Sequence record: ON190024.1 | Reading direction: 5' to 3' (one strand) | DNA: 64,000 bases | In this document: piece by piece, positions 27,450 to 64,000 of the stretch | How the letters are laid out: each line of letters opens with the position of its first letter | How positions within the stretch are numbered: position 1 is the first letter of the stretch | The notes under the pieces: model-generated | Database searches by the model: none | What the model was told of the DNA's origin: nothing | The model's input: the letters and a program-made list of their open reading frames with translations, nothing else | Translations under genes and position numbers: made by a program

Positions 27450-28145
27450 ATGAAGAAGCTCGTACTTGTAGCTGCTGCGGCTGTAGCTCTTGTTGGATGT
27501 GGTGATTTGCCACGTCTGGAAACTAAGACAGACAAGAAATTCACCACGGTTAATGCCGTTGTGAACAAAAAAGAGCGTGAAATGATTAACTACTGGATGG
27601 CAGATGCTGACGGTAGTAACTATCTTTACAACAAGCTTTGGACTGCACTTGCTACTCGTAACAAATACGGTTCTAATGCTGTGCGTCGTTCAGATGATGA
27701 AGTCCCGTTCTGTGATGTTATTGTAGCCCTTGCTAAATCTGAAGAAGGTATTCGAAGCACGTACGAGCGCACATTTAACAATCAGTGGCGAACTCAATAC
27801 GGCATTAGTCTTAATCAGCAATGTGGCTATACTCCACCAGAAACACTCGAAGAGCAAGCAGAGCGCATTGAGCAACTTGAAATGCAAGCTGATTTGAAAA
27901 AGCGTGAGCAACAAGCACAGAGTATTGAAACTCTTGATGACGTTGCCGACGCGACGACTGAGCTACTTGATCCGCATGAGTACGACTATCTAATCGAATC
28001 GGCACGCGAGTGTAATCGAGCCAAAACCAAATTGCTTGAACTAACGCAAGCAGGCAAACCTCTGACACAAGCTGACGGCTCAGATGCACGTAAGCTAATT
28101 ATCGAATGCAAAATGCATAAACTTGAAGTTGAATTGAATAAGTGA
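27450..28145 (+). CDS. lipoprotein, paralogue of 39992..40711
   Basis: signal peptide with LVGC lipobox; shared EVPFCDVI, CNRAK, KLEVELNK. Confidence 0.8.
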   Translation: MKKLVLVAAAAVALVGCGDLPRLETKTDKKFTTVNAVVNKKEREMINYWMADADGSNYLYNKLWTALATRNKYGSNAVRRSDDEVPFCDVIVALAKSEEGIRSTYERTFNNQWRTQYGISLNQQCGYTPPETLEEQAERIEQLEMQADLKKREQQAQSIETLDDVADATTELLDPHEYDYLIESARECNRAKTKLLELTQAGKPLTQADGSDARKLIIECKMHKLEVELNK

Positions 28146-28935: not shown

Positions 28936-28964
28936 TTTCCGATGCGGGTTGTTACGACATCCCG

Positions 28965-28972
28965 CATAAATA
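28965..28972 (+). promoter_or_regulatory. T4-type late promoter
   Basis: CATAAATA, same as the element upstream of the tail-fibre gene (62447-62454, minus strand). Confidence 0.7.
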
Positions 28973-29004: not shown

Positions 29005-29535
29005 ATGCCAACTCCTACAACAGGTGCGATTTCAATCGGTACCGTTCGTGATTATTTCAGTAGAACCGGCGCTGCTTCATTGTCTCAGTACTACAGAGGC
29101 GGCGGTATTGTTCCTGATATTACTGAAAATGCTCACGTACCAACTTCAGGCGCGATTAGCTTGAATGACTTGCGCGGTGTATATCGCTTGTCAACGTATA
29201 CGACATCATTTACGACAACATACAACACCACTGTATCAACATCGAATACGACTTCGCGTAGTACATCAAGAAGTACAACTAGAAGTACTGCATACAGTAC
29301 AACTCGCTCGACTGCGTATACTACTAGTTGGACAACTAGCCGAACTACGTCGGTGGCGAAAGGATCGTATACGACCACATACGCAACTTCACGTGCTACA
29401 ACTCGTTCAACTGCGTATAACACGACACGTTCAACTGCTTATACGTCTACATGGACGACATCGTGGACAACGACGTACAACACAACAAGATCAACATCAA
29501 ACACAACTTCTCGAAGCACGCAAGTTGCAGTTTAA
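29005..29535 (+). CDS. Ser/Thr tetrad-repeat protein, putative virion fibre/adhesin
   Basis: AAGGA RBS; N-domain with two GAIS motifs; 26 X-[STNA]-T-[STA]-type tetrads. Confidence 0.8.
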   Translation: MPTPTTGAISIGTVRDYFSRTGAASLSQYYRGGGIVPDITENAHVPTSGAISLNDLRGVYRLSTYTTSFTTTYNTTVSTSNTTSRSTSRSTTRSTAYSTTRSTAYTTSWTTSRTTSVAKGSYTTTYATSRATTRSTAYNTTRSTAYTSTWTTSWTTTYNTTRSTSNTTSRSTQVAV

Positions 29536-29547
29536 CGAGGTTAAATT

Positions 29548-29766
29548 ATGAGCTACAATGAAGAACACGAGAATCGAATCAACGAGCTTGAGTCAAAGGT
29601 TGCAAGGCTTGAGTCGATAATTGAAAATCTGGTTGAGTCTATGACATCAAACAGCGAAGCTATTATCGAACACATTGCATCACTTGAGACCGAGAGAGAT
29701 TCGATTCTTGCATCATATGATGACAAACTTAATGAGATCGTGAACAAATATGAACCCAAGCAATAG
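29548..29766 (+). CDS. small acidic coiled-coil protein
   Basis: GAGG RBS, heptad pattern. Confidence 0.75.
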   Translation: MSYNEEHENRINELESKVARLESIIENLVESMTSNSEAIIEHIASLETERDSILASYDDKLNEIVNKYEPKQ

Positions 29767-30604
29767 AGAAATGACTGGGTTCAATAACATATCTCGCATT
29801 GGTAAGTTGAAATTACAATCCGATGCAGACAACGTCCGTGCCATGTGTATGGACGTTGTTCGTTTATTGAACTCCAAAAATATACCATCCAACTTCGACA
29901 TCAATCACAATGACGGTGGTAACATCGGCGTGCATGAGTGGGTGTCACAAATCCGCTTCATTCACTTGAAATACATGAACGTTAATTTTCAAACGAAGAT
30001 TTTCAAGCATGCCTATCACAACACTGAAAACGTCGTTGACTATTTTGACACGTTCAAACATTCTGATAAATATCATCTTTCGGCGAAGCCTCGATTCCTA
30101 GAATATGAAAACGTCGTATTTCTATGTGGATCGAATGTGCTTGAATTGGCAATTGACTTTGACAAGATTGATGCGTTAGTCGAACAATATCCTGATTTGG
30201 TGATTAAACCTCACCCGATTACGACGTTGTATTACATCAATATGCTTAAATCTAGATATGGTTCAAAGCGAATTCTATCCCAAAAGATCAGTGGTGTTGA
30301 TGTGCTTAAAGCTGCTAAACGTGTTTGGTTGCCTTCAACGTCTGAGTTCTGGTTTAGTGCCTTGAACTACGACAAAGAAATCGGGTTTATCTCTAAAGAT
30401 GGTTTCTGTGGAACGTACACGTCAATCATCAACGCAGTATGGGAATTGCATGAAGAAACCGGTGATCCATTGAAAGATATTGTGAATAAAATTATCTCGT
30501 CACCTTACTCAGGTCTGTATGGTAGTATGGCAGACTTTGAAGAGCATCACGAGAAATACTGTAATGTGATTCTAGAACTAGGGGGTAATTTCGATAATGT
30601 ATGA
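29750..30604 (+). CDS. GT-B glycosyltransferase-like protein (capsule biosynthesis KpsC/KpsS-like)
   Basis: LVIKPHP, then VWLPSTSEFWFSALNYDK resembling the S..G.EAL motif region; alternative start 29771. Confidence 0.6.
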   Translation: MNPSNREMTGFNNISRIGKLKLQSDADNVRAMCMDVVRLLNSKNIPSNFDINHNDGGNIGVHEWVSQIRFIHLKYMNVNFQTKIFKHAYHNTENVVDYFDTFKHSDKYHLSAKPRFLEYENVVFLCGSNVLELAIDFDKIDALVEQYPDLVIKPHPITTLYYINMLKSRYGSKRILSQKISGVDVLKAAKRVWLPSTSEFWFSALNYDKEIGFISKDGFCGTYTSIINAVWELHEETGDPLKDIVNKIISSPYSGLYGSMADFEEHHEKYCNVILELGGNFDNV

Positions 30605-31229
30605 TTATGTAATTCACACTTCGATTAGTGACAAAAGTCAGCTAAACCAACTAGTGATGTTTGTCGGGTCTTTCATCGAGACGCACAAAAAAGGTCGCGT
30701 GGTCTGCGTGACTGATCTTGAACTTGATTTCACGATGCCTCGACTGTCATTTGAGAAAAAACTACCCGAAGAGTACGTTTTCATTTCAGTTGACAATCTA
30801 TTTTTACAAAAAACATACGGCGTTGTTAGCTACATTGACAGTGGTACTTGGCGATGTACTTGGCAAAAGAATGATCATGATGATTTCGTCATTAAAAAGC
30901 ATGGCGAAAGAAGCGGGTTGATTCACCCTGATATTGCAATTGCAAATTACAATGTTTCGAGACATGGCGATCTCGACATGTATTACAACGCGCTTCGTTA
31001 CATTGAGAGCGCAATCACGATCAACTGCAAAGACTTTGCCCCTGCTGCTGAGAATAAAATCAACAGCTTTTACACGCTTGTATTTCCATGGGAGATTTAT
31101 TTTCACGTTATGATCACTTACCAAGAGTATATTGATTCTGAATACGTTGAGCGAGTTCGCGCTAACTGTCATAAGTTCGCACACTCGGTTTATTACAGAA
31201 AATCAGGGTTGTTACGTGATGGGTTATGA
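30597..31229 (+). CDS. hypothetical protein, possibly degenerate GT-A glycosyltransferase
   Basis: N-terminal beta-alpha-beta pattern ending VVCVTD, similar to GT8-type starts; weak. Confidence 0.4.
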   Translation: MYDYVIHTSISDKSQLNQLVMFVGSFIETHKKGRVVCVTDLELDFTMPRLSFEKKLPEEYVFISVDNLFLQKTYGVVSYIDSGTWRCTWQKNDHDDFVIKKHGERSGLIHPDIAIANYNVSRHGDLDMYYNALRYIESAITINCKDFAPAAENKINSFYTLVFPWEIYFHVMITYQEYIDSEYVERVRANCHKFAHSVYYRKSGLLRDGL

Positions 31230-31902
31230 TGAGATAATTTTAGTATCTGGTCTTGATAGTTTAGTTCTATATGAATTTCTTGAACGAAAGCCACACCCTG
31301 TTTACTTTAAATGGGGTTTTGCTATCGACGACATTGAAATGGCTGCTTTGCCTGAAGAAACAACTATCATAGAAATGCCAGAGATTTTGCATTTGAAACA
31401 TGATCCGTATGAGTTCAAGACACCAAGAAATCCCGATTTAATTGGTCGGAATACGTTGATGTTTAACTCAGTTTTCCATGCATTCAGACCAAACGTAATT
31501 TATCGCGGGATGTTGAAAGGTGATGATTTCTATTACGACGCATCGCCTACGCATTCAGATGAAATCGCAGCTATGTGGTCGAAAATGCTGAATAAAGAGT
31601 GTCGAATTGAACAACCGTTTAAAGACAAAACGAAACGTGACATAATGCAAATGGCGGTCGAATACGGTATTGATGCGAATTCATTACAGCATTGTTACAA
31701 TCGAGAACACAACTGCGGTCGATGTAGCAAGTGTGTGGATGCACATGTTAATTCTATGTACACCGACAACCCAGACATCATGTGGCTGAAACGAATAGTC
31801 AATGATTCGGGTATGTCATCAATGGCTAATCACATGTTTGGTGTTGATACAGTTGACAGAATAAAGGAATTTCTAGATGAATTTGATCGAACAGACTGCT
31901 GA
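31219..31902 (+). CDS. QueC-like PP-loop ATPase
   Basis: SGLDS, GRN, YYD, PFKDKTKRDI, CY...CGRCSKC Zn motif; 227 aa; PP-loop lacks one Gly. Confidence 0.75.
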   Translation: MGYDEIILVSGLDSLVLYEFLERKPHPVYFKWGFAIDDIEMAALPEETTIIEMPEILHLKHDPYEFKTPRNPDLIGRNTLMFNSVFHAFRPNVIYRGMLKGDDFYYDASPTHSDEIAAMWSKMLNKECRIEQPFKDKTKRDIMQMAVEYGIDANSLQHCYNREHNCGRCSKCVDAHVNSMYTDNPDIMWLKRIVNDSGMSSMANHMFGVDTVDRIKEFLDEFDRTDC

Positions 31903-32770
31903 TAAATTCGAGCATAGTTACCGAGAAGACGTTCAAGGCGTACAGTGGTATTTCGGTAGTCGAACGCATGATTTTTATCTGTATGGAATAGACTCTCTTA
32001 TTGATAAAGTCAAAGACTGTGATTTTATTGAAATCAAGCATGTTCAAGAGGGTACGCTGGTTAAACGAGGCGAAGCTGCGGTCACGGTTACGATTACAGA
32101 TCATAGTCGTATCGCATATGGGAACATGATTGAAACATTGTTGTACAATGAGTTGTGGTATTCGAGCACGGTCGGTACGATTTTACATCGTTGTCTTGAT
32201 GTGTTGCATGAAAACGGCTATGACGCTCGTTCAGCATACCCTCAAATCGGACGGGCGAGTTCAACGCCAGAACAGTCAGCTAAAGCAAGGGATGTGTTCG
32301 CACGTATATTTTATCAATCGTCGAATGAGAAAATACCCGTTGCGATGCACAGTGATATTTTAATCAACGGTGAGGAATATTGCATGGAACATTATAACGG
32401 CATTATGATTGATACTTTCGATAAGCAAGCTTGCATTGACTTGATCAACAAGAAAGACTTTCGAGGGACTGTGATGGTTGACTCTCAGCCAATAATTGAA
32501 ACAATTGAGAAAGTTCTAGCTGAAACAAAATGCTTTGTTGCACAAGCTGAAAGTGTTACACTCGATGAGTGGATAAAGATAGTGCGACATTTTAAAGGCA
32601 ATAAGCGAATTTTCTACGGGATTGGTAGCTTTGCATTTAGCAATATATCACGAGACACATTTGGTTTGATTTACAAAGTGTGTGCAGTTAAGAAAAACGA
32701 CAACTGGATCGGAGTTTCAAAGATGACGACAGGTAAACAAACATCGGCTGGTTATAAGGTTATAGGTTAG
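31877..32770 (+). CDS. compact NAMPT/NAPRT-like type II phosphoribosyltransferase
   Basis: aligns by eye to NAMPT at 35934 (EGT, ET....LWY..TV, IDTFD, DS, YGIG, RDT, KM...K...AG). Confidence 0.75.
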   Translation: MNLIEQTADKFEHSYREDVQGVQWYFGSRTHDFYLYGIDSLIDKVKDCDFIEIKHVQEGTLVKRGEAAVTVTITDHSRIAYGNMIETLLYNELWYSSTVGTILHRCLDVLHENGYDARSAYPQIGRASSTPEQSAKARDVFARIFYQSSNEKIPVAMHSDILINGEEYCMEHYNGIMIDTFDKQACIDLINKKDFRGTVMVDSQPIIETIEKVLAETKCFVAQAESVTLDEWIKIVRHFKGNKRIFYGIGSFAFSNISRDTFGLIYKVCAVKKNDNWIGVSKMTTGKQTSAGYKVIG

Positions 32771-32772
32771 TT

Positions 32773-33762
32773 ATGAATTATTGTATAGCGCCGTTTACAT
32801 CGCCGTCTATTACACCAGACGGTTTTAAAATTTGCAGCATGCCAGGTCAGAAAGTATACCCTGATATTTCATTCTGGAATAGTGATGAAGTGATCAAGAT
32901 TCGCGAACAGATTATCGCTGGTGAAATTCCTGAATCGTGCAAGGCATGTCGTAGTATGCGTGACGGGTTGATTGTGTCAAAAGAAAAACCAACTGATACT
33001 CATGTTGACTTGAATTTCAAAGCTCTTTACATTGCGCGGTCGAACAAGTGTGAATATGCTTGTGAAATGTGCAGTTCATCAATCTCACATAGCTATGACA
33101 AGAAATACAATGACGGTAAGTTGGGGATTATTGAGAATGACTTTGATGTTATTCCGTATCTGCACGAAACACAAGCCGTTGCTATTTCGGGCGGGAACCC
33201 TGTCATTGACAAAAAGGTTGCAGAGATTCTTGAGAATCTAGACCCTGACGTGGTAGAACGTTTCATTATTACTTCAAATGGGACAGTCTTTCCAGACAGA
33301 TTCTTGAATGCAATTAAGAGATTGAAATGTGACGCGACTTTGATATTCTCTATGGACGGACCGAAAGAGTTTAATGAAGTGGTTCGATCTGGTGCGAAGC
33401 AAGAGAGAATCTATCGCACCATTAATCGAGTTCTTGACGAGATTGAAGATTACCCAAACTTGCATGTGGCAATTGAGTATACTTTCACGAATAAGTCAAT
33501 TCATCACTACGTTGATTTGTATGATGAAATGCTCTTCGAGATCAACCCGAAGCATTTGAAAAACAACTCAGTTAAAGTGATTGCGAATATGTGTACATAC
33601 CCGCATCACCTTAGCGTTACAACTGTTCCCAAAACCGTCATTGATGACATATTGTTCAATCAGTTGCCATATTTGAGACAGCAACCCAGCCCATTGTCAA
33701 ATCAATTCAAACTTGGCTATGATAAGTTTTTGACTCAGTATCACAACAGCGTGATTATGTGA
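32773..33762 (+). CDS. radical SAM protein with N-terminal twitch domain
   Basis: C.APF...C...WNS...IRE...CKAC then CEYACEMC, GGNP, SMDG. Confidence 0.85.
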   Translation: MNYCIAPFTSPSITPDGFKICSMPGQKVYPDISFWNSDEVIKIREQIIAGEIPESCKACRSMRDGLIVSKEKPTDTHVDLNFKALYIARSNKCEYACEMCSSSISHSYDKKYNDGKLGIIENDFDVIPYLHETQAVAISGGNPVIDKKVAEILENLDPDVVERFIITSNGTVFPDRFLNAIKRLKCDATLIFSMDGPKEFNEVVRSGAKQERIYRTINRVLDEIEDYPNLHVAIEYTFTNKSIHHYVDLYDEMLFEINPKHLKNNSVKVIANMCTYPHHLSVTTVPKTVIDDILFNQLPYLRQQPSPLSNQFKLGYDKFLTQYHNSVIM

Positions 33763-34879
33763 TCAGATCATACGCTTTGATATGTGAGTAAAACTCTGGA
33801 CACGCAGACGATAAATTAGTTTTCGTCTTCGTGTCTATTCTTTTGTTAAGAACAAAGAATTCAGGGTTGAATTTACAAACACTGTGTTCCAGAGTAAGAC
33901 ATTCAGCAACGTGCTTAAATGGTCTAGCCAAATCCTCACGCCCATCTTTTAAATACGCTTCTTCTTTCACTTTGAATCTTGATAATAGCTGGTCTCGAAA
34001 TGCAACTGGAATGTTGTAAATTGAGTATGGATTATCAGGCTCACCGACGACATGCACAGACAAACGTACACGTTTACCATCATAAAGCGAATCAAAATCT
34101 GAAACCAATGTTTCAAGATGTTCAAGAGTCACGTTTGACACGGTCGCAGTGATAACTACATCAAAGTGTTGCTTGATGACTTCAATGTTTGATTTGACTT
34201 TTTTGATGTCTGCAAACAATCGAATATAATCTTGGTATTCTCGTAGACCGTCGATTGATACGAACACCGTTGATGCATTAGCTTCTTTAAGCGATTTGAT
34301 GAGATCTGAGCCATCGGCTAACACTAGTGATGAGCCATTCGTGAAAATATTCACTGCGGCTTTAATGTCGCCTACGTTGCGAAGAACTTCAGGAGCATTT
34401 GACGAGCGGGTAATTTCACCGCCTAGAATTGTCAATGACGAAAGTCCTTTGCTGATTGTGTTGATTGTCGTACTCAAATCATTGAATCGAGTACTTGAAT
34501 CTTCTTCATTGAACAATCTAGCTTTCAAGTCTGATAATTTGCTGTAGCAGTAACGACAAGCTTGGTTACATTCATTACTAGGGAATACTTGTAGCCAGCG
34601 AACTGAATCAGCGGGCATAATAGGTGAAACTTCAGAATCGTGTTCTGTTAGACGCTGTGGGTCATTATCAGTGATGCACATTTGACATGCCTTTGACAGC
34701 TTGCTCATGTCGTGGTTTAGCATTGCTTCACGATAAGCGACAAGCTTTTCATCATTCCAAGCGTCTGCTAGTGTTTTTTCATCAGTAAACCATTCATAAT
34801 CAGCCGAACAGCAAAACGTAATTTGATTGTTTGCTCGTGTGATGAACTGCTTGAACGGCATATAACATAGTGGTTTCAT
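33755..34879 (-). CDS. radical SAM protein with N-terminal twitch domain
   Basis: CYMPF...CC...WN...YRE...CQMC then CNQACRYC, GGE, SIDG. Confidence 0.85.
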   Translation of the reverse strand: MKPLCYMPFKQFITRANNQITFCCSADYEWFTDEKTLADAWNDEKLVAYREAMLNHDMSKLSKACQMCITDNDPQRLTEHDSEVSPIMPADSVRWLQVFPSNECNQACRYCYSKLSDLKARLFNEEDSSTRFNDLSTTINTISKGLSSLTILGGEITRSSNAPEVLRNVGDIKAAVNIFTNGSSLVLADGSDLIKSLKEANASTVFVSIDGLREYQDYIRLFADIKKVKSNIEVIKQHFDVVITATVSNVTLEHLETLVSDFDSLYDGKRVRLSVHVVGEPDNPYSIYNIPVAFRDQLLSRFKVKEEAYLKDGREDLARPFKHVAECLTLEHSVCKFNPEFFVLNKRIDTKTKTNLSSACPEFYSHIKAYDLIT

Positions 34880-41163: not shown

Positions 41164-42216
41164 TCATTTCACCATTTTGATTTGAATCTGATTGTCCATG
41201 TAAGCCATTTTCTTTTCAAATTCAACATCATATTCTGGTCGATGTTCGTATTCGACTGAAAGCATTTGCTTCAGACAACGGTACAATTCCGACTTGTAAT
41301 ACCCTTCTTTCATTCCCTTCATCTGTTCATATTGCTTTTTCATAGCAGCTTTGATTATCTTCGGGTCCATGAATTTGATTGACATTTCTCGCGGTGCTTT
41401 TACTGTGCCAAAGTCAACAAACACCTGAGCCTTTTCAGCTACTTGAATGAAGTCATAAATCGTGTCATAACTCATTCGACTTAGCGTGTGGTGCATACAA
41501 ACATGTTTGCTATGTTCTTTTAGCAACGGTACATTTGCAAGCATCAAGTCGTGGTCGATGTTCTGACGAATGTATTCGTTGCGCTCTTTTCCGCCGTCAC
41601 ATGAAATTGTAAACACTAGACGATGTTTGTACTTTTTACATATGGCTAGAATCTTCTTCGCAAGTGGCGTATGCAACACAGTACCATTTGTCAGAATGTA
41701 AACTTCCGCATTTGTTTCTTCCATGACTTCAGTCAGAACTTCGACTGTTCTCTTGTCCATGAACGGTTCGCCGCCGTATAGCACAACAGTTTCAACACCC
41801 TTCGGGATACTGAAATCGAGTTGTGTGTAATCGTAATGGTCGTCAATGTCATACAAGTCCATGTATGTTTTGCTATTCTTGCCATAGCACATTCGACACG
41901 CTAGGTTACATTTGTTTGACATCAATATTTGAATTGTTCTAGGATGCTCTTCGAGTGCTTCATATTCGAAGTACTTCTGATCAGACAATTCGCCATAACT
42001 CATACATTCTTTGCAGTATTCTGGTAAAGTGTCATACTCAAACATTTTGGCACGATGTTCATTGATGATGTCACTGTGCCACCAGTCTTCAACGTTCGGG
42101 AATGGTTCACTTAGCTGAGAACAGCAAATGTGATACCCATCAGGTTTTGCGTCACGTGTATTAAAGGGAGAGCCACAAAGTGGTCTCTTCCCGTCTTTAA
42201 ATCCGAATTTATCCAT
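41164..42216 (-). CDS. radical SAM protein with N-terminal twitch domain
   Basis: CGSPF...CC...WW...HR...CKEC then CNLACRMC, YGGEPF, TNG, SCDG. Confidence 0.88.
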   Translation of the reverse strand: MDKFGFKDGKRPLCGSPFNTRDAKPDGYHICCSQLSEPFPNVEDWWHSDIINEHRAKMFEYDTLPEYCKECMSYGELSDQKYFEYEALEEHPRTIQILMSNKCNLACRMCYGKNSKTYMDLYDIDDHYDYTQLDFSIPKGVETVVLYGGEPFMDKRTVEVLTEVMEETNAEVYILTNGTVLHTPLAKKILAICKKYKHRLVFTISCDGGKERNEYIRQNIDHDLMLANVPLLKEHSKHVCMHHTLSRMSYDTIYDFIQVAEKAQVFVDFGTVKAPREMSIKFMDPKIIKAAMKKQYEQMKGMKEGYYKSELYRCLKQMLSVEYEHRPEYDVEFEKKMAYMDNQIQIKMVK

Positions 42217-46512: not shown

Positions 46513-46560
46513 AGTCTCGCGTGTATAAATAATAACAATATTATACAAACACGCGAGACT
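46513..46560 (+). promoter_or_regulatory. RBS-sequestering hairpin with embedded late promoter
   Basis: 12-bp inverted repeat AGTCTCGCGTGT/ACACGCGAGACT; TATAAATA at 46524-46531. Confidence 0.85.
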
Positions 46561-46564
46561 ACCG

Positions 46565-47410
46565 ATGAACTACTCGAAAATATACGATGATTTGATGGAA
46601 AGAGCACGCTACCGAACAATTGATGGATATAGTGAAACACATCATATAATCCCGCGCTGCATGAATGGCGATGACTCAGCTTCAAACTTGGTTAAACTCA
46701 CTGCACGCGAGCATTATATCGCACATCAATTGCTTGCTAAAATACACCCAGAACACGCAGGGTTAGTTTTTGCTGCGATTCGCATGACAATGAGTCCTAG
46801 CGGGGATCGTGTCAATAATAGACTTTATTCATGGCTGAGAGAGAAAAATTCTGAGCATTCAAGTGAAAGAATGCGTGAATGGTATAAAAATAATGAACAC
46901 CCAAAGGGGTTCAATGGGAAGAGTCATTCAAGTGAAACCAAATCACTCATTTCGAAAAATACAACAAACGCATTGAGAGAAAAAATTGCAGTTGAGGTTC
47001 ACATGTTTGACATGAACGGAAAATACATCCGCACATTCGATGCATTGACAGACGCTGCAAATTTCGTAGGGGCTTCTAATGCATCAAACATAAAGTACAC
47101 CGCTGAAGGAAAGCACCAATATGCTTATGGGTATAGGTGGTCGTATGACCTCGACGCAAGTTTTGACGATATAAAGGCGCCCAGAGGGAAAAACAACGGG
47201 AAAATGTATATCACAAACGGCGTTGATAATAAAATGATCACGAAAGATGATGTAATCCCATCAGGGTGGCGTCGTGGGAAAACTCAGAAGAATAAGTCTG
47301 ATTCGTCGGCAATGAATCAACTCGCAACGTGTCCTCATTGCGGAAAACAAACGAACAAGGGTAATGCATTACGTTGGCATTATGATAATTGTAAGGAAAA
47401 ACATGTCTAA
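46565..47410 (+). mobile_element. free-standing HNH homing endonuclease (MobE-like position)
   Basis: ETHHIIPRC...NLVKLTAREHYIAH, NUMOD-like segments, CPHCGK...C; lies between nrdA and nrdB. Confidence 0.88.
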
Positions 47411-59027: not shown

Positions 59028-59603
59028 TCACTGTACTTTCTTAGTTCGCTTGTCAATCTCGTGAACTTTACTTTCAAGATTGTCAATACGAGTATTAAGC
59101 ATTTCTCCATCTTTCCCCGTAAAGCGGTCAGTTGAATCAATGTTAATCAATGTCTCGACTCTGGCTAAATCAGTCTCAATCTTAGAGTAACGTGAGTGGG
59201 TACCGTCTATCTTAGTAATAATGGCGTTCTGAGTACTTTTAATACTCTCCACTGAGTTTACTAGATTTTTGTCGCCCAACTCTGACGCACTCCTCAATGC
59301 TCTTACTTCGCTCTCAAGACTACCATAGTTTACAAGCACTTGATCTTGCTTTTTAACGATAAGAGCTTGCGCCCCTTCTAAGCCAATCAGTTGTTGTGCC
59401 TGCGTTGCGTTTGTTAGTTTGATGTCAGTTATTTCTTGCATGATTTTAGCGTTTTGAGCAACTGCGGTTTTACCTTGTTCTTGGACAACTTGTAATGCTT
59501 CCTGCATACTACCGTAGTTTGTCGCCACGCTCATTGAGGTGATAGCCAGAGGGATAAGAATAGTACCTATAACAGCTAACAAAAATTGCGCCATTTTACT
59601 CAT
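59028..59603 (-). CDS. single-TM coiled-coil protein, holin candidate
   Basis: MSKM start, one N-terminal TM, late promoter, position equivalent to T4 gene t. Confidence 0.45.
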   Translation of the reverse strand: MSKMAQFLLAVIGTILIPLAITSMSVATNYGSMQEALQVVQEQGKTAVAQNAKIMQEITDIKLTNATQAQQLIGLEGAQALIVKKQDQVLVNYGSLESEVRALRSASELGDKNLVNSVESIKSTQNAIITKIDGTHSRYSKIETDLARVETLINIDSTDRFTGKDGEMLNTRIDNLESKVHEIDKRTKKVQ

Positions 59604-59650: not shown

Positions 59651-59658
59651 TATTTATA
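59651..59658 (-). promoter_or_regulatory. T4-type late promoter
   Basis: TATAAATA on minus strand. Confidence 0.8.
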
Positions 59659-62416
59659 AACGAAGCAACTTCTTCCACCATGGGCGTTTAAGCTCGTGTA
59701 CTTCGTTCTGAAGCGTGTCTACTTTTGCATTAAGCTCTTTAATAGCTTCAATCAAAAGACCGTTCATATTGCCGTACGCGACTGATAGAATACGTTCTTC
59801 GTCGTCACTTTCCATCACTGCTTCTGGCAGTACTTTTTCCACTTCTTGCGCAATCACACCCGTCTCACGAATATATTCGTCAGAATCGAATGAACTACGC
59901 TTGTCATATGTATACCCGTTTAATTCACCTACTTTATTGAGTGCATTGTCAATAAGCTTGATGTTTTTCTTCAAACGTCGGTCTGAGTACGCTGTCACGT
60001 TACCCGGCGCAGTGAAGTTACCAGTTGAATACTGGAATGACCATTGCTTAGTCGTTGAGCTATTCAGCGACGAAACGATCTGAGCCGTATGCGCGCCAGA
60101 AGAACTCAAAATAGCACCGAATGAGTGCTGATAACGACCACCCGAGTGGTTAATATCACCTTTCATAAAAGCATGATATTCACTAGTACCCGAACTTGAT
60201 TTGTAGTGATAAAATGGGGCTTGTGACGTGTAATGCGAAGCATATGCATAAGACGCCGCAGATCCGTAAGCCGTCATCCTACCCGTAGACAACAATGCAC
60301 TTTGAACTGTTACATCAGTAAAGTCATTCCCATAGTTGACAATCAAGTTTGACGTTGTACCTACTAATGCTCGCTTATTACGAATCTTGAAATCTTGACC
60401 GCCATTTGAGCTAATCAAAGAAGACCCGAGATAGGTTGCTGTGGTAGCCGATGTCGCGTTGCCACTCAGAGAACCCACGAATGTCGGCGCTGTTACACTA
60501 TGCGCAAACACCGCAGTTCCGTTTTCGTTCAATCTGAAATCATCAGATGCACTACCGTTGTATCTAAACGCCATGACGCCGTTTTGATGGTCAAGCTGCC
60601 AGTAGTTATCGCTGTACGTACTGTCCATCAAGTTCAACTGAACGTTTGTGTGTCGAATCGTCAACTGTCCATTGATCGTATCACCTGACTTGCTAACTGC
60701 ACCAATTTCGGACAATGACCACGCAACGTTAGCAGATCCGTTTACAGATTTACCAGTGTTTCCGACTGTCAACGTACGAGCAGTTGTCCACGTGTCGGCA
60801 TTCGGGTGATAAATGTCAGTGAATATCTGAGCCCATGATTTCCATGTACCATTTTCTTGCGTGCGAACAAACCATTTATTCAAACGCCAGTCACTTGCCA
60901 GTTGAGTTTGCCACAAATCACTATATGATTGTGTCAATACTGCATGATCTTGCCCCGATGGTTTATTAGTCGCAGTTGACGTAGCATACATGAATGAATA
61001 TCCACTACCATCACCCGCTGTATCGAGGTTACTCGTGCTAATGTTAGACAAATATGGTGTTAAGATTCTTCCAGTGAATGTATCACCTGATACATTTGCA
61101 AACCGAGCGTCAGATTCAGCTTCAGTGTAGTATCGACCATCGTGCGTATGTGAGTCATTAGCAACCGTAACTGTCATTGTCGCATTTGCACTACCATCAA
61201 TAGAAACCGAGCCGCTTACATCGCCGTTTAATGTCAACGTACGAGCAGTTGTCCATTTGTCCGCGTTCGGGTGATATGCATCATGAAACACTCGTTGGTT
61301 TACTTTAGCAAAAATCTCACCTTCAACTTCAAGACCAGCAGGTGAACCAACACCGCCATTCTGACGAATGATCAACGCTTGACCATTTCCACCTGACGTG
61401 TTAATATCACCATCAGTGATCTCGTGAATCAATTCAAGGTTCTGGCTTGCACTGGTAATCCAGTTGATACCCGAGTTATCTGTTTGATAGTTTGTCTCGT
61501 TAAAACTCAAACGACCGCCAGCTTTGCTAATTGCAACGTTACCAGTGAACGTATCGCCAGCCACGTTAGCAAAACGAGCATCAGATTCTGTTTCAGTGTA
61601 GTAACGACCATCATGCGTGTGTGAATCGTTCGCTACAGTCGCTGTAACGGTCACAGTTGCGTTAGCCGACCCATCAATCGTCATAGACGCAGAACCGCTT
61701 ACATCGCCCGTTAGAGTCGTTGTGAGCGTGCGTGCAGTTGTCCACTTATCAGCATTTGGATGATAACCGTCGTGAAACACATTGTTATCTTTGTACTTGA
61801 TCGCAGTTGTATTAACAACAAACCCACTTGCAGTCGCTGAACCGACTTGCAACGTACCATCAGTACGAACTAGAGACGAGCCGAAGTATACCCCAGTTGT
61901 AAATGCGGCTTGGTCATTGATTCTCAACCACGAATCGAATCCGCGAAATGCTGTTTTCGAGTTGATGTCAATGTTCTCAATGCCGAAGTTTGCTGCCGCT
62001 GCATCAATACGGAAGCGAGTTGTCGCAGTATCATTTTCACGTAAACTAAAATTACCACCATCGTTGATCAGATACCAACGCTTTGTACCGTCATTATCTT
62101 GAAGCAACAGACGCGGAGAACCACCTCGAATCTCAATTTCATTCGCCGTATTTGTCAGTTTACCCGTCATCGTATCGCCGATCTTTTGAACGTAGCCACC
62201 GCCCGCAATCGGGGCAAATCGAGCATCAGATTCAGCTTTTGTAAATGCAGAAGTCGTCCCACCGTTACCTAGTTCGCCTGGCAGTGGTGTGTCGTGTTCT
62301 GTGTAAATTTTGTAGCCTTGGTAGCGGATAGTCTCGCCTTGCGGGTCAAAGCGAAGATTTCCTCCGTGCCAGACTATATTACCACCAATCGCGGTAGTTG
62401 ATCTTAGTTCTGCCAT
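59654..62416 (-). CDS. tail fibre with C-terminal peptidase S74 intramolecular chaperone
   Basis: YSDRRLKKNI...GYTY...GVIAQEV...VAYGN; internal repeats. Confidence 0.9.
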   Translation of the reverse strand: MAELRSTTAIGGNIVWHGGNLRFDPQGETIRYQGYKIYTEHDTPLPGELGNGGTTSAFTKAESDARFAPIAGGGYVQKIGDTMTGKLTNTANEIEIRGGSPRLLLQDNDGTKRWYLINDGGNFSLRENDTATTRFRIDAAAANFGIENIDINSKTAFRGFDSWLRINDQAAFTTGVYFGSSLVRTDGTLQVGSATASGFVVNTTAIKYKDNNVFHDGYHPNADKWTTARTLTTTLTGDVSGSASMTIDGSANATVTVTATVANDSHTHDGRYYTETESDARFANVAGDTFTGNVAISKAGGRLSFNETNYQTDNSGINWITSASQNLELIHEITDGDINTSGGNGQALIIRQNGGVGSPAGLEVEGEIFAKVNQRVFHDAYHPNADKWTTARTLTLNGDVSGSVSIDGSANATMTVTVANDSHTHDGRYYTEAESDARFANVSGDTFTGRILTPYLSNISTSNLDTAGDGSGYSFMYATSTATNKPSGQDHAVLTQSYSDLWQTQLASDWRLNKWFVRTQENGTWKSWAQIFTDIYHPNADTWTTARTLTVGNTGKSVNGSANVAWSLSEIGAVSKSGDTINGQLTIRHTNVQLNLMDSTYSDNYWQLDHQNGVMAFRYNGSASDDFRLNENGTAVFAHSVTAPTFVGSLSGNATSATTATYLGSSLISSNGGQDFKIRNKRALVGTTSNLIVNYGNDFTDVTVQSALLSTGRMTAYGSAASYAYASHYTSQAPFYHYKSSSGTSEYHAFMKGDINHSGGRYQHSFGAILSSSGAHTAQIVSSLNSSTTKQWSFQYSTGNFTAPGNVTAYSDRRLKKNIKLIDNALNKVGELNGYTYDKRSSFDSDEYIRETGVIAQEVEKVLPEAVMESDDEERILSVAYGNMNGLLIEAIKELNAKVDTLQNEVHELKRPWWKKLLRL
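60716..61781 (-). repeat. tandem tail-fibre modules
   Basis: two copies of VFHD.YHPNADKWTTARTL...GDVSGS...DGSANAT...VANDSHTHDGRYYTE.ESDARFANV.GDTFTG plus a partial third. Confidence 0.85.
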
Positions 62417-62446
62417 GTTATTCTCTCATTGAGTACGTTTATCATG

Positions 62447-62454
62447 TATTTATG
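62447..62454 (-). promoter_or_regulatory. T4-type late promoter
   Basis: CATAAATA on minus strand upstream of fibre gene. Confidence 0.75.
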
Positions 62455-62461
62455 AAGATAC

Positions 62462-62486
62462 AAAAAAAGCTCCCAAAGGAGCTTTT
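62462..62486 (-). terminator. intrinsic terminator
   Basis: AAAAGCTCC-tttg-GGAGCTTTTTTT on minus strand. Confidence 0.85.
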
Positions 62487-62487
62487 A

Positions 62488-64000
62488 TTAACTTAGTAGT
62501 GCTTCTAGTCTAGCGATTCGTTCTTCAAGAGCTTCGCGTTTGCGCTTCTCTTCTTTAATACCCTCAATCAATAGACCAACCATATTTCCGTATGCAACTG
62601 CATAGTGACCATCAGCATCGCCACCGGATTCAACAACAGCTTCTGGTAGAACTTCAAGAACTTCTTGAGCAATTACACCAGTTTGTCGCGGACATTCAAC
62701 GTCTGTACGATCATATGTGTAACCATTCAGACGGTCAATTTTCTCAAGCGGATTTGTGATTCGCTCAACGTTAGTCTTGACTCGCGCATCCGAGTATGCT
62801 GTAATATTACCAGCCGACTGAATGCTTTGATAGTAGTAGAAGCCGCTAGTCGCATCAGTTGAGTTGTGAAGCCAACTTGTGTTTCGATGACCAAAGTGCC
62901 ACGTTTTACCATTATCAGAACGGAAAACCCAACTACCCTCATTTGAAGATCTCTGCATGTATCGTGTAGTATCGCCACCCAATGCAATGACGTTCTTAAC
63001 CATCAAGTTGCCGTTTGTCGTTAATGACATTGCCCCATCAGTCGCTGCGTCACTCGAATCACGCCACAAGAATCCACGATCCGTATCGTTGTTCATTGTG
63101 AACGTCATTGCGTAGTCATTCAACCAACCAAAGGATTGTGCGCTTGCCATGCCGATTGTATATGAACCACTAGACCACACTCGAATCTTATCATAAGAAG
63201 AAACACCAGTTGAGATCAATGTCCCATTGACTGTGAAGCTCCCATCAGAATGAGTATGATTGTGTGAATCATCCGCAACCGCAACAGATAATGCAACGTT
63301 TGCGCTACCGTCGATTGAAGCAGAACCACTTACATCGCCGTTCAGAGTCAGAGTACGAGCCGTAGTCCACTTATCTGCCAACGGGTGATAAGATGAGTTG
63401 TAGTTAGCACGCCATCCCGGTGCATAATTAGAACCATTATCAATGTAAATGAATTCTCGTCTAGTTGTCGCACCAGAAGCAGTTGTCGGTGTAATAACTT
63501 TGATTGTGCAGTTTGTTGTTGAAGTACCATGAACTTCAATCACAGAACCCGCAGTACCAAACACACCAAATCCCGTGTCTACTGTCACCTGAGCAGCATA
63601 TGACCAACTACCACGACATGTCCAGTACCAAGTTGAAAACGCGCCTTTTGCAGACAGCAATGAAATAAATTCAGCAGTCGTTACTCGATTATTTGTCCCA
63701 AATGAAATTTGACCTGCACCGTTAGTGCCTGTAACCTCTTGAGGAGACCATGATACGTTCGCTGTACCGTTTACAGACTTGCCAGTTTTCCCGATTGTCA
63801 ACGTTCTCGCAGTCGTCCACTTCGTCGCTTGTGTAGCTGAAGTCGCAGATGTTGCAGTCGTAGCGTTACCACTCAATGCCCCGATGAATGTCGGTGCTGT
63901 GATATTCACAGTCGATGTAATTGAAGTACTCTTAACTGAAAATTGTTTATTGTCAGCTAGTATACCACCGACGCCAAGAACAATCTCACCTGCCGTGTTT
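62488..64000 (-). CDS. second tail fibre with S74 chaperone (5' end outside window)
   Basis: frame stays open to the window edge; YSDARVKTNV...GVIAQEV...VAYGN; shares WTTARTLT modules. Confidence 0.9.
   Translation of the reverse strand, partial: NTAGEIVLGVGGILADNKQFSVKSTSITSTVNITAPTFIGALSGNATTATSATSATQATKWTTARTLTIGKTGKSVNGTANVSWSPQEVTGTNGAGQISFGTNNRVTTAEFISLLSAKGAFSTWYWTCRGSWSYAAQVTVDTGFGVFGTAGSVIEVHGTSTTNCTIKVITPTTASGATTRREFIYIDNGSNYAPGWRANYNSSYHPLADKWTTARTLTLNGDVSGSASIDGSANVALSVAVADDSHNHTHSDGSFTVNGTLISTGVSSYDKIRVWSSGSYTIGMASAQSFGWLNDYAMTFTMNNDTDRGFLWRDSSDAATDGAMSLTTNGNLMVKNVIALGGDTTRYMQRSSNEGSWVFRSDNGKTWHFGHRNTSWLHNSTDATSGFYYYQSIQSAGNITAYSDARVKTNVERITNPLEKIDRLNGYTYDRTDVECPRQTGVIAQEVLEVLPEAVVESGGDADGHYAVAYGNMVGLLIEGIKEEKRKREALEERIARLEALLS

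Follow-up and report, generated by a model that had tools for sequence, protein, structure and literature searches.

A candidate tail-fiber tip adhesin with an Arg-aromatic hairpin ladder in KVP40-like Vibrio phages

A two-gene solution to receptor binding at a fiber tip has been described for phage S16, in which the gp37 fiber ends in a self-cleaving chaperone domain and bears on its tip gp38, an adhesin with a gene of its own (PMC7289586). For the genus Schizotequatrovirus, a 2025 study used virion proteomics and listed seven predicted fibers, with "no candidate obtained for OmpK" (PMC12028318); KVP40 is reported to use OmpK. Here we analyzed a stretch of 64,000 nucleotides (the window; sequence record ON190024.1, bases 1-64000 of Vibrio phage PVA8 / PC-Liy1) and focused on an open reading frame (ORF) for a 176-residue protein at 29005-29535 on the plus strand. 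With ~96.7% identity to KVP40, the source phage is, judged by its sequence, a KVP40-like Schizotequatrovirus; KVP40-like phages have a broad host range in Vibrio and are under study for aquaculture. The ORF is the homologue of KVP40.0254, annotated there as "hypothetical protein", and its product belongs to phrog_30374 (function unknown). We propose, with a probability of about 0.6, that this small and often mis-annotated protein is a gp38-like, two-part adhesin of the tail-fiber tip and that its gene has been displaced from the fiber gene. The protein would consist of an N-terminal docking module (the N-domain) and a very long two-stranded hairpin.

The C-terminal part of the protein is a strict four-residue repeat. 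The original prediction, made from the letters alone, had described a protein of 176 residues with 13 + 13 tetrads around a central VAKGS, Thr as the third residue in 25 of the 26 tetrads, five Arg in each arm and no Asp or Glu. Translation of the ORF agrees with the protein as quoted, and the tetrad layout, the Thr count and the Arg count were all reproduced; when the arm residues were shuffled 100,000 times, no shuffle reached 25 and the maximum was 22. The lack of Asp and Glu holds for residues 63-176, where the charge of the presumed ribbon is +11, but not for the N-domain, which has three Asp and one Glu. All 23 Arg, Tyr, Trp and Phe residues of the arms lie at tetrad position 1, and Ser and Thr together make up 62% of the C-terminal part.

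To locate the pairing between the arms, we scanned every antiparallel sum i + j and counted Arg or Lys opposite Tyr, Trp or Phe, with no register assumed. As a null model, residues were shuffled only among positions of equal tetrad phase. In PVA8 the best register was i + j = 239, with nine Arg-aromatic pairs, no Arg-Arg pair and a center between K119 and G120; shuffled sequences had a mean maximum of 4.7 pairs and none of 2000 reached nine (P < 0.0005). The register originally assumed, i + j = 235, has six Arg-aromatic and two Arg-Arg pairs against nine and none at 239, and was given up. The scan returned the same type of ladder in relatives, each time with P < 0.0005: KVP40 (best sum 239, nine pairs), QD01 (231, nine pairs), D479 (231, 13 pairs on 13 of 13 rungs), 6E35.1a (240, 12 pairs) and L023, a metagenomic protein of 128 residues (195, five pairs). 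VS2, K575, F86, D480, phi-pp2 and V07 have 8-12 pairs about their own turn, counts for which the shuffle test was not run. Thus, the ladder center fell in the protein's own central turn in all 12 tetrad-type proteins examined, and their best registers contain no cation-cation pair and 8-13 Arg/Lys-aromatic pairs, or five in the short L023. The orientation of the ladder pairs varies between homologues. L023 (L023:6001-6384) is also the short form of the family, with Asp-Gly-Lys in its turn.

The two arms are balanced in length. Subtracting the protein length from the register sum gives 63 for proteins of 168, 176, 177 and 185 residues, 61 for D479 (170 residues) and 67 for L023, a range of 61-67 over 12 proteins of 128-185 residues. 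This near-constancy means that the last residue faces, in every case, the residues that immediately follow the N-domain. Counted outward from the turn, the 12 rungs of QD01 recur in PVA8, which adds one further rung (R85-W154), equivalent to one additional tetrad in each arm. The symmetric change in tetrad number expected of a hairpin under the original prediction was therefore found between PVA8 and QD01. A metagenomic protein, P0190, carries the same N-domain and tetrad arms at residues 65-115 and 208-258, separated by a globular segment of ~85 residues. Its arms form nine Arg-Trp pairs at one register and ten cation-aromatic pairs in all (none of 1000 shuffles reached ten), and its C-terminus lies opposite residue 65. 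A head placed between laddered arms implies that the ladder can serve as a head-carrying stalk, and the KVP40-like phages have the headless form of this protein. A globular head inserted between the arms is seen both in P0190 and in another metagenomic protein, P0108, which lacks any Arg.

With a two-residue turn, the Arg-aromatic pairs would recur at every fourth residue pair, alternate with Thr-Thr pairs and share one face of the ribbon at non-hydrogen-bonded positions, and the other face would be nearly all Ser, Thr and Ala. Since the complementarity test is blind to the difference between intra-chain and inter-chain pairing, the arms could also pair between chains, or ribbons could pack via their Ser/Thr faces into a multi-chain sheet, barrel or rod. 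Fiber tips are trimeric, an all-hydroxyl face could conceivably pack on itself, and the model confidence for the arms, given below, is low. Nevertheless, the ladder center is always found on a short Gly/Lys turn or on a loop flanked by Cys, the chain invariably comes back to the N-domain boundary at its C-terminus, and, as P0190 shows, the turn is exactly where a head domain can be added. These three features are what a single-chain hairpin predicts, and we consider the multi-chain arrangement very unlikely. A membrane hairpin and an ice-binding surface were also entertained, but the composition, with ten Arg and no hydrophobic face, and the context led us to reject both.

The records of phi-pp2, PVA8, PC-Liy1, QD01 and 6E35.1a label the protein "cell wall mannoprotein", a name that stems from an automated similarity call to yeast Tir proteins (PMC3468402). 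The label is a composition effect: the likeness to Tir-type cell wall mannoproteins is limited to Ser/Thr richness, and the phage protein differs in lacking any family match. Against Pfam it matched no family even at E ≤ 10, and against NCBIfam only the serine-rich NF033849 at 16.8 bits, where the cut-off is 650, so it falls outside that family. Read literally, the label would make the C-terminal part a disordered, Ser/Thr-rich and possibly glycosylated linker, which we find hardly credible. The Ser and Thr content would suit such a linker, as would a weak glycosyltransferase family 52 match in a 284-residue protein two genes downstream (29750-30604, plus strand). That match scored 19.8 bits against a cut-off of 26.1 and had no NCBIfam or PDB support, and the lead was dropped. 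A linker is also at odds with the strict period of four, the confinement of all aromatic and Arg residues to one phase, the balanced arms and a cross-arm complementarity that is conserved through sequence change; nor does a label from an automated Tir similarity, with no Pfam family behind it, lend it weight.

Structure prediction was consistent with the hairpin topology. From the single sequence, AlphaFold2 placed strands at 97-118 and 121-138 with a break at 119-120, at a mean predicted local distance difference test score (pLDDT) of 52. With a 46-row alignment, the N-domain reached a pLDDT of 92-97 and strands were placed at 62-75, 105-115, 124-134 and 162-175, spans that fit the same hairpin, with the arms below 50. 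The predicted topology thus agrees with the hairpin, at low confidence. Taken together, the unbiased register scan in 12 proteins, the balanced arms and the modeled turn at 119-120, despite low arm confidence, support the proposal of a long antiparallel hairpin centered on VAKGS, with its register corrected. A Foldseek search against the PDB gave nothing significant (best E = 0.21, template modeling (TM) score ≤ 0.19), and one against BFVD returned uncharacterized homologues only.

The second line of evidence comes from the N-domain, for which the original prediction had noted a resemblance to small fiber-attachment modules. A first N-domain search found two proteins only; the later search found 934 representative clusters (50% identity) at E ≤ 0.001. 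The domain almost always occupies residues 1-60, in proteins of 80-660 residues, and is in neither Pfam nor NCBIfam. Near-invariant columns in 70 members are G7, F18, Y30, R31, G32, G33, V36, P37, N42, P46, T47, G49, I51 and F56. The PVA8 protein shows the family feature, namely ~60 N-terminal residues with a Tyr-Arg-Gly-Gly core and two Ser-Gly-x-Ile-Ser-type motifs. Close relatives of the window seem to be missing from the two large protein libraries, in which the best match was 62% identical, and a word-based search with residues 60-176 gave nothing at E ≤ 1, as composition correction removes the repeat part. When the C-terminal parts of 150 N-domain members were scanned against Pfam, we found the GP38 tail-fiber adhesin in 25, PKD in eight, Gly_rich_2 in six, Calx-beta in four, the SBBP beta-propeller in three and BACON in two. 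Three members (P0201, P0185 and P0253) match the GP38 profile at 27.7-56.5 bits; in P0201 the match spans residues 75-293, and this protein has a further match in the S16 receptor recognition protein (PDB 6F45 chain D). The N-domain is an uncatalogued, abundant module that probably marks detachable fiber-tip adhesins across very different phages, and its profile would find receptor-binding proteins that current predictors miss.

We then considered where N-domain genes lie, using S74 and N-domain profiles built for this analysis and 88 loci outside the KVP40 group. A same-strand ORF with an S74 domain ends ≤20 nt upstream in 41 of the 88 loci and 21-2000 nt upstream in another 26, that is, within 2 kb in 67. 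The other 21 have no upstream S74 ORF, and six of these hold under 1500 nt of upstream DNA. For instance, in SU10-like contigs the stop codon of a 587-residue Peptidase_S74 fiber gene is where the P0201 gene starts, the P0045 gene lies 447 nt after an S74 fiber gene in T4-like contigs, and the N-domain gene follows a fiber gene in the cultured phages RTH11, DLP_6, X1 and YL1. L023, one of the tetrad-hairpin proteins, is encoded 643 nt downstream of an S74 fiber gene. Xanthomonas phage RTH11 has tandem N-domain genes (L005:4001-4471 and L005:5044-5502) after one very large S74 fiber gene. The KVP40-like loci (L001-L004 and L014) have no S74 ORF in their flanks, yet the window holds two S74 fiber genes ~30 kb away, along with a single N-domain gene. 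The adhesion-type domains of the relatives and the 67 loci within 2 kb downstream of an S74 fiber gene uphold the reading of the N-domain as a fiber-attachment module, and the two distant fiber genes fit the original suggestion that the protein is a displaced tip.

The N-domain might instead dock to another part of the virion or to a host structure, the protein being a decoration or whisker-like element or non-structural. The lack of a fiber gene beside the target gene in KVP40-like genomes would be explained in this way, and, among the 82 other loci for which at least 1500 nt of upstream sequence are available, 15 are likewise without an S74 ORF in that stretch. We consider this unlikely in view of the 67 loci with a same-strand S74 gene within 2 kb, 41 of them within 20 nt, and of the many N-domain members that carry a GP38 adhesin domain. 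The same gene order raises a different alternative, a tail-fiber assembly chaperone that acts on the S74 fiber and, as has been reported for T4 gp38, is missing from the mature particle, because chaperone genes also lie immediately downstream of fiber genes (PMC7289586). Presence of the protein in the virion is itself a prediction, which leaves room for such a role. A chaperone is, however, difficult to reconcile with C-terminal parts that are typical displayed binding modules (GP38, PKD, Calx-beta, BACON, beta-propellers) and vary freely while the N-domain is conserved. The S74 fibers already bear their own chaperone domain, and close relatives differ mainly at the hairpin tip; we judge the chaperone role quite unlikely.

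Under the adhesin reading, either S74 fiber of the window is a candidate partner. The PHROG of the 920-residue fiber is "long tail fiber protein distal subunit". The region before the S74 domain of the 473-residue fiber resembles only the fiber of locus L041, whose next gene encodes an N-domain; this is a weak lead, and as it was the sole link, choosing the partner by tip similarity was dropped. The 191-residue ORF directly after the 920-residue fiber gene was considered as an adhesin and dropped, as it has an N-terminal membrane helix followed by a coiled coil.

Our proposal for the tip adhesin is as follows. The N-domain (residues 1-62) would form a compact docking module that caps the mature tip of one S74 fiber, and the protein would be present on the virion. 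Residues 63-176 would fold back at K119-G120 into a two-stranded antiparallel ribbon of ~57 residue pairs, ~19 nm long if extended. In KVP40-like phages the head would be reduced to a turn or a Cys-flanked loop, with some relatives keeping a globular head on the ladder stalk. An alignment of PVA8, KVP40, phi-pp2 and V07 has 15 variable columns, 11 of them in the tip third of the hairpin and one in the N-domain. As the most variable part among close relatives, the distal third is the likely host-contact surface, and the ribbon may bind OmpK or a surface polysaccharide.

This would make the protein a missed receptor-binding candidate of KVP40-like phages. The tetrad gene is uncalled in the records of D479, K575, F86 and D480 and in the published re-annotation of 6E35-1a (PMC12028318), where short other-frame or opposite-strand ORFs are annotated in its place. 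The non-coding frames across the repeat remain partly open, and we attribute the splitting or omission of the gene to this. Since the re-annotation lacks it, the protein cannot have been among the annotated fiber candidates. It is unlikely to have been in the search set of that virion proteome, the only one found for the genus, although the authors' database was unchecked; the proteome is thus silent either way. The most specific version of our proposal is that a 19-nm core-less, Arg-aromatic and Thr-zippered ribbon at the S74 fiber tip is the receptor-contacting OmpK partner, missed through ORF splitting by gene callers. We offer this version tentatively and regard it as somewhat unlikely.

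Several points weigh against the adhesin proposal. AlphaFold2 confidence in the arms is low (pLDDT 29-71), and no free two-stranded ribbon of such a length is known to be stable alone. Complementarity cannot by itself separate pairing within a chain from pairing between chains. P0004, the closest metagenomic tetrad relative, fails the ladder test (P = 0.40). In D479, 6E35.1a, K575, D480 and F86, two Cys enclose a short loop at the turn, and the turn-flanking Cys pairs of D479, 6E35.1a and F86 are one to two residues off the ladder register; the idea of Cys-Cys as an exact cross-strand pair was therefore dropped. In KVP40-like phages the neighbors of the gene are small genes without assigned function, and the S74 fibers are encoded ~30 kb away on the opposite strand. 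Lastly, neither sequence nor fold comparison linked the N-domain to any solved structure or to the N-terminal domain of S16 gp38. A profile of 70 members against the PDB gave no match below E = 0.2, with 6F45 absent from the matches, and 6F45 was likewise not among the Foldseek results for the confident N-domain model, although a 62-residue domain affords such searches little power to detect distant homology.

The start of the gene is the ATG at 29005, which follows an AAGGAA ribosome-binding site and is common to QD01, 6E35.1a and D479; the KVP40 annotation has a longer ORF of 197 residues from 28942, whose upstream ATG is not conserved. The frame is coding, as it is continuous with an N-domain for which there are hundreds of homologues. 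In the repeat part, ten synonymous and eight non-synonymous codon differences separate PVA8 from KVP40, and seven of the eight amino-acid changes swap residues allowed at their own tetrad position; the eighth is R162V, at position 1. No nucleotide changes fall in the first 64 codons (192 nt, including the N-domain), and 23 fall in the remaining 336 nt. Ser is encoded by both AGY and TCN and Arg by both CGN and AGA, and Tandem Repeats Finder detected two short 12-bp arrays only. The repeat is kept at the protein level and not at the DNA level, and a DNA-level slippage repeat was rejected on the mixed Ser and Arg codon families and the near-empty Tandem Repeats Finder result.

Upstream of the start (Table 1), the stem-loop was not listed by a simple terminator scan because no T-run follows it. 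The adjacent CATAAATA is a motif match to the T4-type late promoter and suggests that the gene may be expressed late. The 920-residue S74 fiber gene has the same motif at 62447-62454 on the minus strand, likewise in the order hairpin, motif, ~30 nt and ATG. Perfect copies of TATAAATA occur only twice in the window. One, at 46524-46531 on the plus strand, precedes a homing endonuclease gene (46565-47410) between ribonucleotide reductase subunit genes, and the other, at 59651-59658 on the minus strand, precedes the 191-residue ORF located after the fiber gene.

Table 1. Positions of the tip-adhesin candidate, its upstream signals and the fiber-related genes in the window
Feature	Position	Strand	Remarks
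Stem-loop GCGGG ... CCCGC after upstream gene	28944-28965	+	Read from sequence; conserved in KVP40 and QD01
Late-promoter-like motif CATAAATA	28965-28972	+	7/8 match to T4-type TATAAATA; 32 nt before ATG
Ribosome-binding site AAGGAA	28990-28995	+	9 nt before ATG 29005
176-residue protein, coding sequence	29005-29535	+	Stop included; start codon common to diverged relatives
N-domain, residues 1-62	29005-29190	+	Proposed docking module for S74-type fiber tip, from 934 clusters and relatives' gene neighborhood
Ascending strand (predicted), residues 63-119	29191-29361	+	Tetrad arm 1 = residues 65-116
Central VAKGS, residues 117-121	29353-29367	+	Two-residue turn K119-G120; best register centered at 119.5
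Descending strand (predicted), residues 120-176	29362-29532	+	Tetrad arm 2 = residues 122-173; C-terminal VAV opposite S63-Y65
191-residue ORF directly after 920-residue fiber gene	59028-59603	-	phrog_15749 (unknown function); own perfect late-promoter motif
920-residue distal long-tail-fiber protein, candidate docking partner	59654-62416	-	Peptidase_S74 at residues 811-867; Pfam Phage_T4_gp36
473-residue fiber protein, candidate docking partner	62488-63909	-	C-terminal Peptidase_S74 at residues 373-425

The gene order target, ORF of ~70-100 residues, ~284-residue protein, ~210-residue protein and QueC is kept in KVP40, QD01, 6E35.1a and D479. On the upstream side, 27450-28145 (plus strand) encodes a 231-residue protein with a lipoprotein-type signal peptide; its homologue in 6E35-1a has a small value in a Table S8 column where structural proteins have larger ones (PMC12028318). 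The regions 31132-34879 and 41164-42216 hold a QueC-like gene and several radical SAM genes, a 7-deazaguanine-type cluster unrelated to the target.

Compared with described systems, the protein is closest in plan to the T2/S16-type gp38 adhesins (PF05268; 6F45 chain D). Both are small proteins with an N-terminal docking part and a C-terminal binding part, although this architecture is proposed for the phage protein studied here, and relatives of the latter are, as in S16, encoded right after a fiber gene with a self-cleaving chaperone end (PMC7289586). The PVA8 protein differs in having no GP38 or polyglycine domain, with nine Gly and no glycine-rich stretch, and in a gene that is not next to the distal fiber gene, the nearest S74 fibers lying at 59654-63909 on the other strand. 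T4 gp38 and the Mu Tfa-type assembly proteins are likewise small, encoded downstream of a fiber gene and active on its distal end (PMC7289586); no sequence relation to them was found, and the variable, display-type C-terminal domains of the family fit an adhesin better.

For the ribbon, the top PDB rows from Foldseek, phi29 and Andhra tail proteins and beta-barrel pore-forming toxins, resemble it in their very long two-stranded hairpins, but unlike membrane hairpins of the toxin type it has ten Arg and no hydrophobic face, and no match was significant. A further parallel may be found in tryptophan zippers, cation-pi hairpins and core-less sheets such as the center of Borrelia OspA and the staphylococcal SasG rods. 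Two-stranded sheets that lack a hydrophobic core are stabilized by Thr and by aromatic or Arg-aromatic pairs that face each other across the strands at non-hydrogen-bonded positions, and the register found here would put the Arg-aromatic pairs at just such positions. Zippers have 12-16 residues, and the other core-less examples (OspA, SasG) are three-stranded or domain-capped; the PVA8 ladder, in contrast, would run to ~57 residue pairs built from a natural four-residue repeat. If the proposal is true, this free-standing core-less zipper ribbon is a protein architecture without a described natural counterpart, a very long natural beta-ribbon whose pairing can be read from sequence covariation like that of an RNA helix.

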